Assembly: GCA_000320545.1 (NCBI GenBank) | Contig: ADNK01003173.1 | Location: 1 to 64,000, forward strand | Reading direction: 5' to 3' | DNA: 64,000 nucleotides | Source: Bigelowiella natans CCMP2755 | Taxonomy: Eukaryota > Protista > Cercozoa | Shown: positions 30,188-36,053 of the stretch, in pieces | Position numbering within the stretch: position 1 is the stretch's first letter | How the letters are laid out: every line of letters starts with the position of its first letter | The notes under the pieces: generated by a model | What the model was told of the DNA's origin: nothing | Databases searched by the model: none | Seen by the model: only the letters and a program-made list of their open reading frames with translations | Program-made: the position numbers and the translations under genes

Positions 30188-30670
30188 ATGGGACAGTACT
30201 TCGGCAAGAAAGTTTTTGAGCGCGCAGTGGAAAGCAAGTTTGAGGATTTCACACTGAAAGACGTCAAGACGCACGCGCGCGTTCTGAGCGTTTATGATGG
30301 GGACACCTGCACGCTGGGCTTCAAATGGCTTGGGAAATACTTCAAAGTGAAGGTGCGCATGTACGGGTATGATTCTCCAGAAATGAGGCCTCGAAAGAAC
30401 CAGGAAAACCGAGAAGAGGAAATCAAAGCTGCAAAATTAGCTAAGGAGTATCTGATTGGCGTGACCAAGGACCAGATATTGTGGGCACATTTTCTCGACT
30501 TCGATAAGTACGGGCGCCCGCTTGTGACTCTGTACTTGAATCAATACATGTTTTGCTGCCTCGGGAATAACAAAGAAAACATCAATGAGATGATGGTAGA
30601 AAGCGGTCACGGCTACCCCTACAAAGGAGGGACGAAGAAAAAATTCGTAGCGACGGAAAAGAAGGTTTGA
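30188..30670 (+). CDS. Staphylococcal-nuclease (thermonuclease)-like protein, intronless, possible N-myristoylation
   Basis: VYDGDT, VRMYGYDSPE, DKYGR, INEMMVESGHG, YKGGTK; MG N-terminus. Confidence 0.9.
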   Translation: MGQYFGKKVFERAVESKFEDFTLKDVKTHARVLSVYDGDTCTLGFKWLGKYFKVKVRMYGYDSPEMRPRKNQENREEEIKAAKLAKEYLIGVTKDQILWAHFLDFDKYGRPLVTLYLNQYMFCCLGNNKENINEMMVESGHGYPYKGGTKKKFVATEKKV

Positions 30671-31361
30671 ACCCAAATTCAGGACGGAAAGGCTTATGCT
30701 TCACACGTCTTGACTCTTTCTCCGCTGTGCCACATAGATGTACTGTGTTTTGTACGTGAAGAAACGACTATGTAGATACGTGAGTGTGCAAAAACGTTCA
30801 TGCTACAGCTAGACAGTAGTACACTAGCACTGGCTACGCGTATACATGGATCGCAGTGCACTACCACGGATGCAATATGAAGTGTGCACACGCCTAACAA
30901 AACAAACAATGATCACATACGAGTGCACGATGGCATGAATTGAACTCGCACATGCCATCGCATCATACGCTAGCACATAGCCTATGCACATGCGCTTGCT
31001 TCAGCCCCAATTGAGGCATGTATGTGTGCGAGCTGCAACGTATCACAGCTGCCACGGCAGCGCACAGCCTGCTGTGACCTCGTAGGCGCATGGATATTCT
31101 TTCCTTGGATTTTCCTTTCTAGCTTTTATACTTTGCGTGCAAACGTAGGGCAATGTGTCGCATGTGAATGTCATGGCACACACATAAAACGCACTACAAG
31201 GTGGTAGGCGCTAGCTACAGCTGCACATCTTAACATGCAGCTGATGAGCGCATCTACATGTGTCATAGCTGTAGGGTGCTTCAATCAATGATGTCAAATC
31301 GGCTCGCTCAATGCTATATTCAATGTCTTTCTTTGCTAAAGAAATAAATGCCAAAAAAAAA

Positions 31362-34300
31362 CTAGTTAACATCAACATCTGTGGCTTGCAACGTACCTGC
31401 AGCGATTAATGTCACAAGCGCAGATGCGAGGCTTACCATTAAGCCAAAGCTGATATCGATCCCATACATCTTAAGTGTAAGCGATTGATCTCTCGCGACT
31501 CTTTCGCTCGCTGCCTCGAGTAAAAACTTCATAGTCTCCATTTTCCTGCCTTCGTCCTGGTTCGCTCCGATCCAATCGACATCCACGTTCAGAAGTCCTA
31601 CGCTCGAATCTAAATGCTTTACGATCCTTCTGACATCAGACTTCTCGTCCAGGGGTCCAGCCACTCTGTCTGGAGCTTTTGTCTCTTCTTTTACTTCTGG
31701 CTTTGTTATTGACTCCATGGTCGGCATGGCCAGTTCGTGCGAAGCATCGACCGACGCCAATCCGTGCGAAGCATCGACCGACGCCAATCTGTTGAGCTTC
31801 GGGTTGAAGAAGCCGTTTTCCAAAGCAGGCGCCTCTTCTCTGGAGTTGCCTAATTCTTTTTCATCAAAGAACTCGGTGGCCCGTTTTACCCCGATGCCAC
31901 GAGCTCGCTCTTCGTCTCTACGAGACTTTTTATGGTTAATGTTTAAATTGGATATGGATTTCCAAAGCTGCTCGCAAACGGAAAATTTGTAGGATGTCAG
32001 CACGTCGATGATAACGTCGTTCATAGAATGGTTCGCGTACGCTGCGGTATATAGGACGAGGATGGAGTATAGCGACAATAAAATAAGCAGTGCGAAGCGT
32101 ATAATCTGCTCTTTTTCGTCAAGAGCAAAGATTTGTCCATTCTCAACAACGCCAACGACAACGAGCACCACCACGACAACCAAGGGTGCAATGATTAAGT
32201 TGATGGGAAACACGGATTGTAGTTTCTCTTTCATTTGATTGAAAACGCGACGACGGATCGAAAGCCAAGCTTGTAAGTTTTGTGGGGAGTTTAATCGTAT
32301 AAAAAGTTTCAAGCCGTAACGCTTCGCAGCGGACGACGATGACATATCTCCAATCGCGGAAAATTTGTAGAGGGTATAAGCGGCCACTTTAAACCATAGA
32401 TGCACTTTAAATAGGAGCCAAGTAAGACCCAAAGAACACACGAGGAAGTAGGTCAATGCTACAATGAACCCCGATCCCCCAGGAAAGAAGCTTTGCCCCC
32501 TTCTGAGCTGTATCATACCTGGGACGCAGCCGATAATCACGCCAACCAAAAAGCAATACAACCATTTCATCCTGTCATGGAGGTTCGCATGGGTGTAAAG
32601 GACCAATGAGTACACGTCTGGCTGCCACCGTTTCTCAATCCTCGAAAACGTTTCTTTCGTAGAACCGTGAATATCTGCGAGAACGTGCGAGATAGATGAG
32701 ATCTTCTCCACAAAGGCGAATGATTCCTCGGAAAACCTGCAGTACTCAATTTGCTTCTCGAAGAGGTCAGAGGCATCTTTGACTGTGTCGCTGTCGAATT
32801 CGTAGGCTCGCGCGTCTGCCAACATGGAATGGTCCCCAAGAACAACCTGCTCGGAAACGTTCCCAACCATGAAAGCGATAACAATTGGGGTCCACGCCTC
32901 CGTGTAGGTAGCATCGGACTGAGACGTGTACTGAACGACGAGGCTGGCAATCGACACTATTGAAACCAGCAGTAAAACGAGGAAAAAAGCGGATGTCCCT
33001 CTGATCTGACAACCTTGCCTATAAAACCATGTCAAGGGAGCAGACAGCGGCGCTGTTAGCGTGTAACACAAGTTCTTCAATACGCTCCCAATGGTTGTCG
33101 TTGGAGCATTTAGAATGGGATTTCTTTCTTTAACTCTTAGGGATCTTAGTCTCGCTTTCAGCTCAGTTGCCAACTCTCTGAACCACACGCTCACTCCCTT
33201 CTTTTCCTCAGGGGAAACGTCTACATAGTCAGGAAAAGTGGAACATATTGTCTCGAGAAAGAATCCCGTGGCCTGCTGGGCATTCCTGTTCCTGACACCG
33301 TTACGCTCTAGATGCATTGCTACACAAATCATCAAGTCGTTCAAGATCTTCGCGTACTGTTTACTAGCATGCAGGTGCCTAATTCTTCTGTTGTGGTACA
33401 TAACACGATGTATGCTGTGCACAATTTGCGACTCCGGGAAACCCCGCGACGCAAACAGTTTCCGTACGATCATAAAGATACAAGCAGACTTTTCCTCATT
33501 CGCAAAAGTATTTCCTAGTATCTCCATAGCTGATCGAACATTGTTCACAACATCTACGATGAGATCCGGCTCTGCGATGCGATCGAAAAACGTATTTGAT
33601 GTTGCGACAAACTGCATGGATTGACGTATCTGCGCTTTCTTGCCTTCTGCAGCAATGCTCTTTAACCTGGTCAGTCGCTTCTTCATTTTGGTTTCACCAA
33701 TTTTTGATTCCTTTTCCATTTTAGCCTCCTTATGTTGCGTACTGAATTGCGTCTTTGAGTCGCTCCCAGGGGTATCGGCAGTCGGGGATTTTGAGTTTTT
33801 GACAGGTAACGAATTCGACGAAGGCCTAGGATTATCCTTAAGATCCAGGCCCTTTTTTGACTCTGAAGATCTGCCAACTTCAAGACGATCCAACCGTTCA
33901 ATTCGCGGAAACAACTCAGCGACCATATCGATAGCATCCGGCCTTTTTCCACGATCATGATCAAGGCATTTTCTTATTATGTTCTCCATGAATTTTAAGT
34001 CATCACCCACATGTTCCTTCAATATGCCAAACCTTTCTGAGTTCTCGAATTCGATTACCTTTTCATCTGTCTCGCGACCAGAATCTACCACTAGCTTTGG
34101 TAGGCTATCTTTGAGCTGCAACTTTCCACTTACAATAGCCTTCGTCTGCTCACGAATTGAACCAGAAACACAATAAGGTATTTTCCCCCTTGTGATCAAC
34201 TCCCACATTGTAACCCCTGTACATTATAGATATGGGAATCAATTCCTTCCTGCGTCGCCGACTAATTTTGTTTGAGGCGAAGTTAAGATGCTTCGGGGTT

Positions 34301-34366
34301 AGAAAGGAGACAAGGACAAGGAGGCAACGAAGAGTAGGTGAGAGAGGGTGGGGAAGGAGAGAAAAA

Positions 34367-34408
<42 letters not shown>

Positions 34409-35198
34409 GAGAGAATACTTTCAGACTAGACAAAAAACAGAAATTTTATGATGCAGCAAGGTAGAGTGAAAGATGGATTATCTAAGCTTTCTGGACGTGT
34501 TTATATTTCATTTTAATATTTGTTCACTCTCTACTACCGGCTGAATAAATGTCACTTCGGAACGAAAACACCCGGCTGCGTAGGGACTCTGGGGCTGTCC
34601 AAGCCCATGCTAACGGTGTCCTGCTAACGTCCTTGCCTTCTCCATTCATAATCAATCCGAAATCAGCAATTTGGACATCGAATTTATTCGTGAGCAGCAA
34701 ATTGCGGCACGCAATGTCTCGATGAATGATTCCGTTGCTATGCATCCATTGTAAACCGCAAAAGAGACCAAATATGATGCGGAAAAATAGTTTTGGATCC
34801 GTAAAATCGTAACGTCCATGTAGCTCGTCCAGACTACCCATTTCGGCAAACTCAACTAGATAGCACTGTTTGCCTTCAATCGTCTGCGTGATTCCAACGA
34901 GCTGTAAGATATTCGAATGTCCCGAGAGTTTCCTCAAGCCTGCGATTTCGGCGCTGAATTCCTTGCTAAAATTTTTATTCTTGTTAATCTTAGCAACTAG
35001 TTTGGCGCTCCCAACGGAAACTAAATACGATTCTCCAAAATTTCCCTGCCCTATCTTTCTCCAGTTTTTCATGGACTCATCTTCGAAGAATAAGGGGTTT
35101 GTATTTCCACTGTAAGCTGTAAGATCTCTTTGGGCATATAAGGGTAAGTAATTGATGTCATCCAAGTCTTCTTCCTGAGGCAATTGTTCAAAATGCAT
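31362..35198 (-). CDS. Tyrosine-kinase-like domain fused to a C-terminal 7-TM PHTF/gustatory-receptor-like domain; intron 34217-34537
   Basis: IGQGNFG, VAK, HRDIACRN, DFG, WTAPE, SDIYSAG|VTMWEL; seven hydrophobic segments in about 31362-33090 with FIRLNSPQNLQAWLSIR and LKMYGIDISFGLMVSL. Confidence 0.85.
31736..31789. repeat. In-frame 27-bp tandem duplication (LASVDASH[G/E] x2)
   Basis: CGTGCGAAGCATCGACCGACGCCAATC x2. Confidence 0.9.
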
Positions 35199-35593
35199 GT
35201 TTTATTTCCTCGAAGTGCAACAGGATGTTTTATGATTAACAAGTGTATGCGACCATACCGAGGCGAATGTTTCGTTTTTTTCCAAATCTTACAAATAGCG
35301 ATCAGATCATCATGCACTTCAACATACAAAGTTCTCTAGTTGTTGCTCTTGCTTACTTTCTTCTCCGCGTGTTCCGTGTACATAAAATCTTCCTTAACTA
35401 TTGTCTGATGGCAATTGTTCAAAAAGATGTTTTATTTCCTCGAAGTGCAATAGGATGCTTTATGATTAACAAGTGTATGCGACCATACCGAGGTGTGAAT
35501 GTTTCGGTTTTTTTCCAAATCTTACAAATAGCGATCAGATCATCATGCACTTCAACATGCAAAGTTCTCTAGTTGTTGCTCTTGCTTACTTTC
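35179..35593. repeat. ~180-bp direct duplication at the 5' end of the kinase gene
   Basis: 35179-35360 and 35410-35593 are near-identical with small indels and contain intron-like GTAAGC...AG and GTATGG...AG segments on the minus strand. Confidence 0.9.
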
Positions 35594-36053
35594 CGCTCTT
35601 GTTGAGACTTCGAAGTGGCGTCCGTTTGAATTCGCATCCCCGACGAAAGAGAGCAAAATTTGCGGCGTGGATGAATGAATGAATGGGCGGGGCAGGTTTT
35701 AGACGCCCACAGCTGCTGGACTGACTGCGCACGGCCTCAACCGAATGGAATGTTTGAGCTGTGCAGGCGATTCGCGTTGCAGTGTCGTCCCCAGACAAAG
35801 CGATAGCGTGGGGCTCTAAGCTTGCGCTAGATCTATGAGCTGATGCGAAAGGATGACGAGTTGAAGAGCGCGTCGTTACCAGGTTCCTCCTGACCGAAGG
35901 AATTCGGGAATCCTCGTAACGTCCAAACTGCTTCTCTGGGTTCAGTTTCAGTACTACTGCAACATTGATGTAGTAACTTGGGCAAAATTACCGGGGAAAA
36001 TCCTCTGTCAGTCTCTTTCTCATCATCCCCCGTAAACTTTCCTAGATTTTTTG

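Follow-up and report, generated by a model that had tools for sequence, protein, structure and literature searches.

A two-exon gene of Bigelowiella natans predicted to fuse a tyrosine-kinase-like domain to a membrane domain of the insect Or/Gr channel fold

A gene of the chlorarachniophyte Bigelowiella natans CCMP2755 joins a protein kinase to a seven-helix membrane domain. It lies on the minus strand of the window (the whole stretch of DNA that was analysed, 64,000 nt of contig ADNK01003173.1) and is a genuine gene fusion whose membrane part is a variant within a superfamily already known. From its sequence, it is highly likely to be one gene of two exons with a product of ~1,170 aa. In this product, a cytosolic N-terminal kinase would be followed by a flexible linker, a helical-looking region of ~180 aa and a C-terminal seven-helix domain. 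Structure modelling gives us good confidence that the latter has the seven-transmembrane ion channel (7TMIC) fold of insect Or/Gr channels and PHTF. The proposal as a whole, a two-exon fusion with the 7TMIC fold that acts as a tetrameric channel with a coupled kinase, we consider somewhat probable. All elements that an earlier note had described for this region are present on the minus strand (Table 1), confirming the original observation. The open frame of 950 codons, the strong kinase match and the 88 database relatives of the membrane part (E ≤ 1e-3) together rule out chance.

Table 1 Predicted features of the kinase-7TMIC gene in window coordinates. Model residues refer to the structure model of the membrane domain.
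Feature	Position	Strand	Remarks
Exon 1	34538..35198	(-)	Start codon 35198-35196; kinase subdomains I-VIII
Intron	34217..34537	(-)	GT..AG, phase 1, 321 nt; contains CT/GA microsatellite
Exon 2 start, kinase subdomains IX-XI	33900..34216	(-)	..WELITRGKIPY.., ..KCLDHDRGKRPDA..
Linker, charged, Ser/Lys-rich	33645..33899	(-)	Exon-2 residues ~106-190
Cytosolic region, ~180 aa	33102..33644	(-)	Exon-2 residues 191-371; helical-looking from sequence
Membrane domain, predicted 7TMIC fold	31365..33101	(-)	579 aa; portion modelled
TM1	32925..32996	(-)	Model helix 36-59; hydropathy
TM2	32799..32906	(-)	Model helix 66-101; hydropathy
TM3	32502..32576	(-)	Model helix 176-200; family P-x3-R pair (Gln in this protein)
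TM4	32340..32471	(-)	Model 211-254; 44-residue helix extending into cytosol
Intracellular loop 2 (IL2) + TM5	32133..32339	(-)	Model 255-323; conserved ..GLKLFIRLNSPQNLQAWLSIR.. (family N275, W279, R283)
TM6	31866..32117	(-)	Model 329-412; 84-residue helix; near-invariant Asn357 at membrane exit
Intracellular loop 3 (IL3)	31578..31865	(-)	Model 413-508; disordered, acidic, short internal repeat
Split TM7	31368..31577	(-)	Cytosolic TM7a (model 509-537), membrane TM7b (552-578)
Stop codon 31364-31362 + ~45-nt 3' UTR	31317..31364	(-)	UTR reaches end of two transcript contigs

The combined length of the exons (661 + 2855 nt) is divisible by 3, and the predicted splice restores kinase subdomain IX in frame (..SDIYSAG/VTMWELITRG.., with the slash at the junction). 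The ORF 34524-35198 contains the G-loop GQGNFG, VAK, HRDIACRN, DFG and TAPE. The 45-aa tail ahead of the kinase is free of a signal peptide by sequence reading. Exon 2 is a single open frame of ~950 codons; its ORF, 31362-34208, encodes 948 aa counted from the first Met and 950 aa counted from the splice. The two exons were analysed apart and not as one spliced chain. Searched against Pfam, exon 2 matches no family at E ≤ 1, and its residues 191-371, likewise without a Pfam family match, aligned to none of the 88 relatives.

Exon 1 matches the Pfam families PK_Tyr_Ser-Thr (E 9.3e-29) and Pkinase (E 2.2e-27). The match ends at profile position 189 of 258, and the kinase motifs absent from exon 1, those of the C-lobe, open exon 2. 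For this stretch (33900-34216), the best PDB match is a kinase-fold C-lobe at the expected positions, which at E 0.45 is not significant alone; the motifs have the order and position to be expected from the point at which the exon-1 match to Pfam is cut short. Since the predicted splice joins the two exons, the kinase core would be complete: the catalytic residues are all present (G-loop, VAIK Lys, alpha-C Glu, HRD Asp, Asn, DFG and APE), together with the subdomain IX Asp and the subdomain XI Arg, within exon 1 and up to residue ~100 of exon 2. The domain is thus apparently an active, TK/TKL-like eukaryotic protein kinase. An N-terminal kinase with a tyrosine-kinase-type loop HRDIACRN, as the earlier note had described, is therefore borne out by the Pfam match and the motifs. 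The loop fits the AAR type (HRDLAARN; Ala at +2, Arg at +4, no Lys at +2). Subdomain VIII reads PLAWAWTAPE, two residues more than the P-x-x-W-x-APE of tyrosine kinases. The best PDB relatives of exon 1 are CSK (2.3e-20), JAK2, ABL and FGFR, with IRAK4 and a plant lectin kinase scoring close behind. A regular-expression scan of the catalytic loops of kinase paralogs identified one clear HRDLACRN case, and a wider loop pattern yielded nothing useful. Kinase paralogs and 7TMIC paralogs share no contig in the B. natans genome.

In the membrane domain, hydropathy reveals seven peaks (exon-2 residues 403-427, 441-460, 550-572, 581-608, 669-690, 703-725 and 917-945), which coincide with the seven helices of the structure model (pLDDT 76.8, pTM 0.74). 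This agrees with the seven TM segments read from the DNA beforehand. The amphipathic segment reported with them is consistent with an extra helix directly before TM1 in the model (residues 2-28), a candidate for the N-terminal re-entrant loop TM0, which has a pLDDT of 64-69 and is covered by few family members; structural alignments begin at residues 22-31. Similarity to Or/Gr 7TMICs had been named beforehand as the test of the fold, and Foldseek found it: ranks 1-8 are all Gr/Or chains, and 18 Gr/Or chains are among the matches listed to rank 22. In the model, TM4, TM5 (helices 273-297 plus 300-323) and TM6 are long and project into the cytosol as an anchor domain. The model of a paralog contains corresponding TM4-6 helices (248-291, 312-361 and 366-427) and a split TM7 (430-466 and 480-508); built on a shared alignment, the two models are only partly independent. 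The hinge between TM7a and TM7b reads ..LKMYGIDIS.. (family D538, K544 and G547).

The predicted topology places the N-terminus inside the cell and the C-terminus outside. Lys and Arg number 0/1/0 in extracellular loops EL1-3, versus 8/9/22 or more in IL1-3. EL1, EL2 and EL3 have 6, 10 and 5 residues, versus ~75, ~45 and ~95 for IL1, IL2 and IL3 plus helix extensions; IL1 is modelled as ~75-90 aa of helices and a hairpin. Because this topology puts the N-terminus inside, the kinase is expected in the cytosol. The cytosolic N-terminus claimed earlier thus holds as a prediction, from the positive-inside count and the absence of a signal peptide before the kinase.

The named members of the membrane-module family are all cercozoan, namely chlorarachniophytes and Mataza. 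The search for paralogs that had been proposed yielded 10 matches at 8 loci of the same genome, corresponding to this gene and 7 paralogous loci. The module is always C-terminal and follows diverse cytosolic domains, including C2, SPRY, Kelch, cNMP-binding and jacalin. EF-hands in paralogs (E 0.0057 and 0.00056) fall below the Pfam cut-offs, and the label was reduced to 'EF-hand-like'. The nearest full-length relative, a 2,891-aa protein of Amorphochlora, has a jacalin domain in place of the kinase. No kinase was found among the relatives (all 88 by phmmer, the 33 long ones by Pfam); the kinase fusion is accordingly young and confined to this lineage. Conservation in the family is highest in IL2, in TM5-6 and at the TM7 hinge, and the same regions have been reported to be the best conserved ones among 7TMICs (10.1101/2023.08.30.555482). 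A word-indexed protein search with the membrane region returned nothing, not even the protein itself, because the public models differ in length.

The 7TMIC superfamily comprises the insect Or/Orco and Gr channels as well as DUF3537, GRL, Grl and PHTF proteins (PMC9998090; 10.1101/2023.08.30.555482). The earlier note had proposed a PHTF/Gr-like domain from two motif parallels. Both quoted strings are present in ORF 31362-34208, and the PHTF strings it compared them with occur verbatim in PHTF2 sequences (PMC9998090, supplement). Aligned by eye, the PHTF motifs coincide with near-invariant columns of the family. Collinear features, also judged by eye, are P-x3-R in TM3, F-x-R-L..QN[LI]xxWLS[IL]R in IL2, Y-[AS]-N after TM6 and D-x-P-h-[KR]-h-[LFY]-G at the TM7 hinge. 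The family hallmarks look PHTF-like (Class B) at the sequence level. The Pfam model PHTF1-2_N (PF12129; PHTF = PTHR12680) does not match this protein and matches one relative of 70 at E 0.034. The profiles 7tm_6, 7tm_7 (PF08395), Trehalose_recp and DUF3537 (PF12056) do not match this protein either; 7tm_7 matches one of 70 relatives at noise level (E 0.022). A six-frame genome search with the DUF3537 and PHTF1-2_N models was blank, as were the tool controls, and says little. Language-model neighbours include DUF3537 and 7tm_7 clusters. Insig, which surfaced in the PDB sequence search with exon 2 (E 0.08), was rejected as noise. The Gr TM7 motif TYhhhhhQF is absent from the TM7b columns, and Gln572, tried as a conserved Gr-like Gln in TM7b, was dropped as a motif because 15 of 57 members keep it. 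We found no published report of a kinase paired with the 7TMIC fold; the word 'kinase' is absent from the main text of both 7TMIC screen papers and of Benton et al. 2020.

In the mechanism that we propose, the membrane module would tetramerise via the cytosolic anchor, formed by the extended TM4-6 and TM7a, as in solved Or/Gr channels, and TM7b would line the pore. The tetramer would hold four kinase domains beneath the channel. Their targets would be the long cytosolic loops of the channel itself, in IL2 the Ser-rich beginning and in IL3 the disordered stretch of ~95 aa, and/or adjacent subunits and substrates. A single 'channel-enzyme' would in this way couple ion flux to phosphorylation. 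The tetramer, conduction, ligand and coupling are inferred, with channel activity extrapolated from insects; a chemosensory function of the module, as the earlier note suggested, is likewise an inference. Coupling between channel and kinase is a tentative idea that we hold at somewhat less than even confidence. It is possible, although we would sooner doubt it, that the protein functions as a novel kind of 'chanzyme', in which a 7TMIC channel gated by a ligand carries its own conventional TK-like kinase and this kinase senses or determines the gating state. The cercozoan family would then more generally reveal PHTF-like 7TMICs to be signalling channels that interchangeable modules (kinase, C2, EF-hand-like, cNMP-binding, SPRY and Kelch) control from the cytosol. 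A role of the module in cytosolic signalling can be argued from its fusion to a kinase and, in relatives, to Ca2+/lipid-binding, cyclic-nucleotide-binding and protein-interaction modules.

The transcript contig L018 is colinear with positions 34200-31318. This places the kinase C-lobe and the membrane domain on one mRNA with no further intron, and the separate transcripts for the kinase and membrane parts that the earlier note had considered were not what we found. RNA across the exon 1-exon 2 junction, proposed earlier as support for the splice, was sought and none was found: scans of metagenome/transcriptome DNA for exon-1 transcripts were negative, both with an exact 23-mer at the 3' end of exon 1 and with a wobble-tolerant pattern over the catalytic loop. 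Two transcript contigs are available, both from an allele that is 99.2-99.5% identical to the genome. Both carry a 1-nt deletion at 32727, which separates TM1-2 from TM3-7, and the longer one has an additional 11-nt tandem duplication after 33838, in the linker. These changes break the reading frame of the transcript allele, while the frame of the genome is intact. Between this allele and the genome there are 7 non-synonymous and 2 synonymous changes, and selection on the allele looks relaxed, at low power. In public collections the two parts stand apart as ORF-style entries, P0097 with 182 aa and P0091 with 948 aa. P0097, from the same genome, is the only match of an exon-1 word search.

The fusion might accordingly not be a working gene, being instead a recent product of exon shuffling that is decaying or strain-specific, or a kinase exon and a membrane ORF with separate products. 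The two frameshifts and the 7:2 ratio of the transcript allele would fit this, as would the start of L018 at 34200, barely inside exon 2, the missing exon-1 transcript, the separate public entries and a kinase that is unique among 88 relatives. However, the genome copy is open over 1,170 codons and retains all kinase catalytic residues and the family hallmarks, and a kinase C-lobe, useless without exon 1, is nevertheless in frame and on the same mRNA as the membrane domain. P0097 continues past the donor site into intron sequence and is thus an ORF call rather than a spliced model. Because it is the conserved module that the 1-nt deletion disrupts, we place the defect in the transcript allele and not in the genome sequence. 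On balance, we regard a non-functional fusion as improbable; if it were decaying and strain-specific, the finding would amount to an annotation fix and the description of a cercozoan 7TMIC family.

The fold may instead be right and the function different, with the module serving, as ER-resident PHTF might, as a multi-pass anchor or scaffold on an internal membrane. There it would position the kinase and, in the paralogs, the other cytosolic modules; signalling would fall to the kinase, free of ion flux and external ligand. PHTF1 is reported as ER-localised and without known function, and function has been demonstrated for no PHTF and no non-animal 7TMIC (PMC9998090). Very different cytosolic domains on the same module are what a generic anchor would lead one to expect, and the missing Gr TM7 motif, with a Gln near the outer end of TM7b in 15 of 57 members, points the same way. 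Against this, the near-invariant residues (in IL2, where TM6 leaves the membrane and in the hinge of TM7a/b) and the full anchor-domain geometry of both models would be superfluous in a plain anchor, and ion channels are classically regulated by modules of the C2, EF-hand-like and cNMP-binding kinds. We consider this alternative unlikely, though worth keeping in view. That the Or/Gr resemblance is convergent or a helical-bundle artefact, and that the module belongs to an unrelated lineage-specific family with 7-8 TM helices, for example a TMEM39-like one, appears very improbable.

The 7TMIC fold occurs from insects to archaea, and domain fusions are among the few clues to its function that can be obtained from sequence only. 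If a signalling channel-kinase is the correct reading, it would provide the first functional clue for PHTF-type proteins. The result also corrects the public protein sets for this B. natans gene, in which the link between kinase and 7TMIC is invisible because the gene is split into two ORF-style fragments.

Several differences from known systems are apparent. Relative to the 7TMIC superfamily, the protein is extended at its N-terminus by ~790 residues, a protein kinase among them. PHTFs carry no enzyme domain. Its IL1 of ~75-90 aa is longer than in Ors, shorter than in PHTF, where it exceeds 300 aa (PMC9998090), and much shorter than that of the paralog L011. TRPM6 and TRPM7, the known 'chanzymes', combine a tetrameric cation channel and a protein kinase on its cytosolic side in one polypeptide, with a 6-TM TRP channel fold and a C-terminal atypical alpha-kinase; here, the predicted channel fold is unrelated, and so is the kinase, which is of the conventional eukaryotic kind and lies N-terminally. 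GPCR-PIPK fusions of oomycetes, Dictyostelium and other protists (PMC5784254) similarly unite a seven-helix sensory-type membrane domain with a kinase, but their GPCR is N-terminal and their phospholipid kinase C-terminal, while here the order is reversed, the membrane domain would be a 7TMIC of inverted topology and the enzyme belongs to the protein kinases. Receptor tyrosine and receptor-like kinases also pair a membrane sensor, here a candidate one, with a TK/TKL-type kinase, and as in these receptors oligomerisation could drive trans-phosphorylation. In receptor kinases, an N-terminal ligand domain outside the cell is connected by a single TM helix to a kinase at the C-terminus, whereas the B. 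natans protein has its kinase at the N-terminus and a polytopic membrane part with a predicted channel fold.

The gene combines a tyrosine-kinase-like domain with a seven-helix membrane domain. Both the gene and its unusual pairing of domains are real; the pairing is a new variant within a known superfamily, and both parts very probably belong to one gene. Exon 1 and exon 2 were searched as separate sequences. Exon 1 contains the kinase motifs of subdomains I–VIII (GQGNFG, VAK, the alpha-C Glu, HRDIACRN, DFG and TAPE), and its N-terminal tail lacks a signal peptide. The Pfam matches to PK_Tyr_Ser-Thr (9.3e-29) and Pkinase (2.2e-27) reach only position 189 of the 258-position profile, which leaves the domain truncated in this exon. 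Excision of the intron, whose AG is preceded by a pyrimidine-rich stretch, restores ..SDIYSAG/VTMWELITRG.. (slash, splice junction), a textbook kinase subdomain IX. The first ~100 residues of exon 2 supply what remains of the C-lobe; the subdomain XI Arg lies within ..KCLDHDRGKRPDA.. there. Searched on its own against the PDB, this piece scores best with the C-lobe of a kinase-fold protein, aligned where expected; with an E-value of 0.45 the match is corroboration only.

Features of the kinase-fusion gene in window coordinates
Feature	Position	Strand	Description
Kinase ORF	35198-34524	minus	224 aa; 45-residue tail first, then subdomains I-VIII
Intron	34537-34217	minus	321 nt, phase 1; GT at 34537, AG at 34218-34217
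Exon 2 frame	splice to stop 31364-31362	minus	single open frame, 950 codons

Several features accompany the gene. Within the intron, 34345-34405 comprises a (CT)n/(GA)n microsatellite, about 40 nt long, together with a pyrimidine-rich tract; similar CT/GT/poly-G runs border the exons of two paralogous loci, L014 and L015. Immediately upstream of the start codon is a ~230-bp tandem duplication of two blocks, 97% identical (35197-35365 and 35427-35598). Its proximal copy starts at the ATG itself and, from the minus-strand read, may enter the CDS by a few bases. The duplicated sequence could be the promoter or 5' UTR. Shortly past the 3' end of the gene, a 160-aa ORF (30188-30670, plus strand) contains ..VRMYGYDSPE.. 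and presumably resembles staphylococcal-nuclease-type thermonucleases.

Two MMETSP-derived transcript contigs match the window at 99.2–99.5% identity. L018 (2,893 nt) is colinear with 34200-31318 and L019 with 33120-31317, so that a single mRNA runs from the kinase C-lobe through the linker to the end of the membrane domain. For the C-lobe, this speaks against the separate transcripts that the earlier note named as a refutation of the fusion. The contigs indicate no further intron in exon 2 and a 3' UTR of about 45 nt. As the 5' end of L018 lies 16 nt into exon 2, it is silent on the splice, for or against; two scans of the metagenome/transcriptome collection found no exon 1 transcripts.

The two contigs differ from the genome at the same eight bases, indicating a single source allele or strain. 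They also contain frameshifts: a G is missing from both at 32727 (exon-2 residue ~496, in the inner loop IL1), and in L018 11 nt of the linker are duplicated in tandem after 33838 (residue ~126). Loss of the G leaves TM1-2 and TM3-7 in separate frames. Since these form one chain in every complete relative, the defect belongs to the transcript allele and not to the genome sequence. Coding differences between the transcript allele and the genome number nine, seven non-synonymous and two synonymous. The genome allele keeps ~1,170 codons intact; the allele seen so far in transcripts looks broken and may be a null allele or a strain polymorphism of the gene.

Public collections split the gene into two ORF-style proteins treated as unrelated. 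One, P0097 (182 aa), runs past the donor site and on into intron sequence; the other, P0091 (948 aa), begins at an internal Met at 34208. Because of this split, the link between kinase and 7TMIC is not visible to database searches of those sets.

The membrane region of exon 2 displays seven hydropathy peaks and has no match in Pfam or in a PDB sequence search. AlphaFold2 prediction of 579 residues from a 70-row family alignment yielded a mean pLDDT of 76.8 and a pTM of 0.74. Structural alignments of the model span 296–325 residues, starting ahead of TM1 and running through TM7b; the ninth hit scores 7.8. In an independent Foldseek search, Gr/Or chains occupy the first eight ranks and 18 of the ranks shown down to 22, in line with the likeness claimed in the earlier note; probabilities reach 1.0 and E-values are weak (best 5.8e-3). 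In the model, seven helices pack in the characteristic manner; the loops are short on the outer side and long on the inner side, TM4-6 are long (helices of 44, ~50 and 84 residues), and TM7 is split, its helices (509-537 and 552-578) flanking a conserved Gly hinge. A further helix ahead of TM1 (model residues 2-28, pLDDT 64–69) is a candidate for TM0. The N-terminus is predicted to be inside, based on the cytosolic kinase and the positive-inside rule (Lys+Arg counts of 0/1/0 outside versus 8/9/22 or more inside). The predicted structure makes a 7TMIC fold likely.

The most conserved family columns (model numbering) are P194, 198, N275, W279, R283, N357, D538, K544 and G547; position 198 is Arg in the family and Gln in the B. 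natans kinase-fusion protein. PHTF sequences hold four motifs in the same order and at equivalent places (PMC9998090, supplement), and the PHTF strings given in the earlier note proved exact. By eye and post hoc, PHTF ..FPFLHR.. resembles the family P-x3-R, the PHTF N-x3-W-x3-R string resembles FIRLNSPQNLQAWLSIR of the kinase-fusion protein, and ..KYSN.. after TM6 resembles the family motif at the equivalent place. The PHTF TM7 hinge ..DSPFRLYG.. compares with DEPVKLLG or DEPLRLFG in the family and ..TLKMYG.. in the kinase-fusion protein (PMC9998090). IL1 is longer than in Ors, like that of Class-B proteins. Pfam PHTF1-2_N gave no match. Language-model neighbours, which serve as leads only, include the DUF3537, 7tm_7 and Trehalose_recp clusters (0.85–0.91) and TMEM39.

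The window corresponds to contig C564 of the 91.4-Mb assembly used for paralog searches. As the earlier note had suggested looking for, paralogous loci occur in this genome, with TM3-TM7 in common at 19–33% identity. One of them, L016, holds the complete module in a single 657-aa ORF. In L011 (G000:C214:6000-15999), the module is part of an ORF (9935-4395, minus) open for more than 1,846 aa that ends in TM1-TM6, so TM7 has to be encoded by another exon; within its ~1,200 N-terminal residues Pfam recognises only a weak EF-hand. L012 (G000:C234:44000-49733) and L014 (G000:C3227:92000-101999) are closely similar and lie on different contigs. In both, the module is interrupted in IL2 directly after ..LSYG; this common break point suggests that the gene was duplicated recently and that the copies share an intron.

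A profile built from the paralogs retrieved 88 proteins at E <= 1e-3 and 47 at <= 1e-10 among 1.84 billion representatives. Named members come from Bigelowiella, Lotharella and Amorphochlora (chlorarachniophytes) and Mataza, all Cercozoa; the remainder are metagenome or run assemblies. Two are named EP00466_Bigelowiella_natans (EukProt/JGI; Bigna1 74519 and 87401). The module is C-terminal in every long hit. Domains in the relatives include C2 (2.4e-12), SPRY (1e-31), Kelch (4e-38), cNMP-binding (6e-18), jacalin (4e-6), DAC (3e-6), a glycosyl-hydrolase-3 C-domain and, as weak matches, EF-hands. A kinase occurs in none of the 88. With such varied N-terminal domains, the family behaves as a membrane module receiving shuffled cytosolic modules, of which the kinase version is, judging by these sequences, one young instance. 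The kinase itself has at least 35 paralogous matches in the genome (28–52% identity), one fused to Kelch repeats and one carrying HRDLACRN; none lies on a contig with a 7TMIC paralog in the genome searched for both.

7TMICs have thousands of members in unicellular eukaryotes (PMC9998090; 10.1101/2023.08.30.555482; PMC7746228). The word "kinase" is absent from the main texts of these three papers, as is Bigelowiella, the latter also from the searched supplements of the first two; "fusion"/"fused" and "Rhizaria" are absent from the main texts of the two 7TMIC papers searched for those words. No other paper in the literature searched links a 7TMIC with a kinase fusion. The chemosensory role that the earlier note attached to the module is not supported. 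On the model of the solved Or/Gr tetramers, four subunits would come together through the anchor domain, TM7b lying at the axis, and four kinases would hang below the channel. Their targets could be the Ser-rich start of IL2 (..DMSSSSAAKRY..), the disordered IL3 or neighbouring subunits. Coupling of channel and kinase within this protein remains a tentative proposal, somewhat short of an even chance. We favour a channel-enzyme because of two known systems: the sensitivity of insect Ors is tuned by phosphorylation of Orco's IL2, and TRPM6/7 couple a channel and a kinase in one chain.
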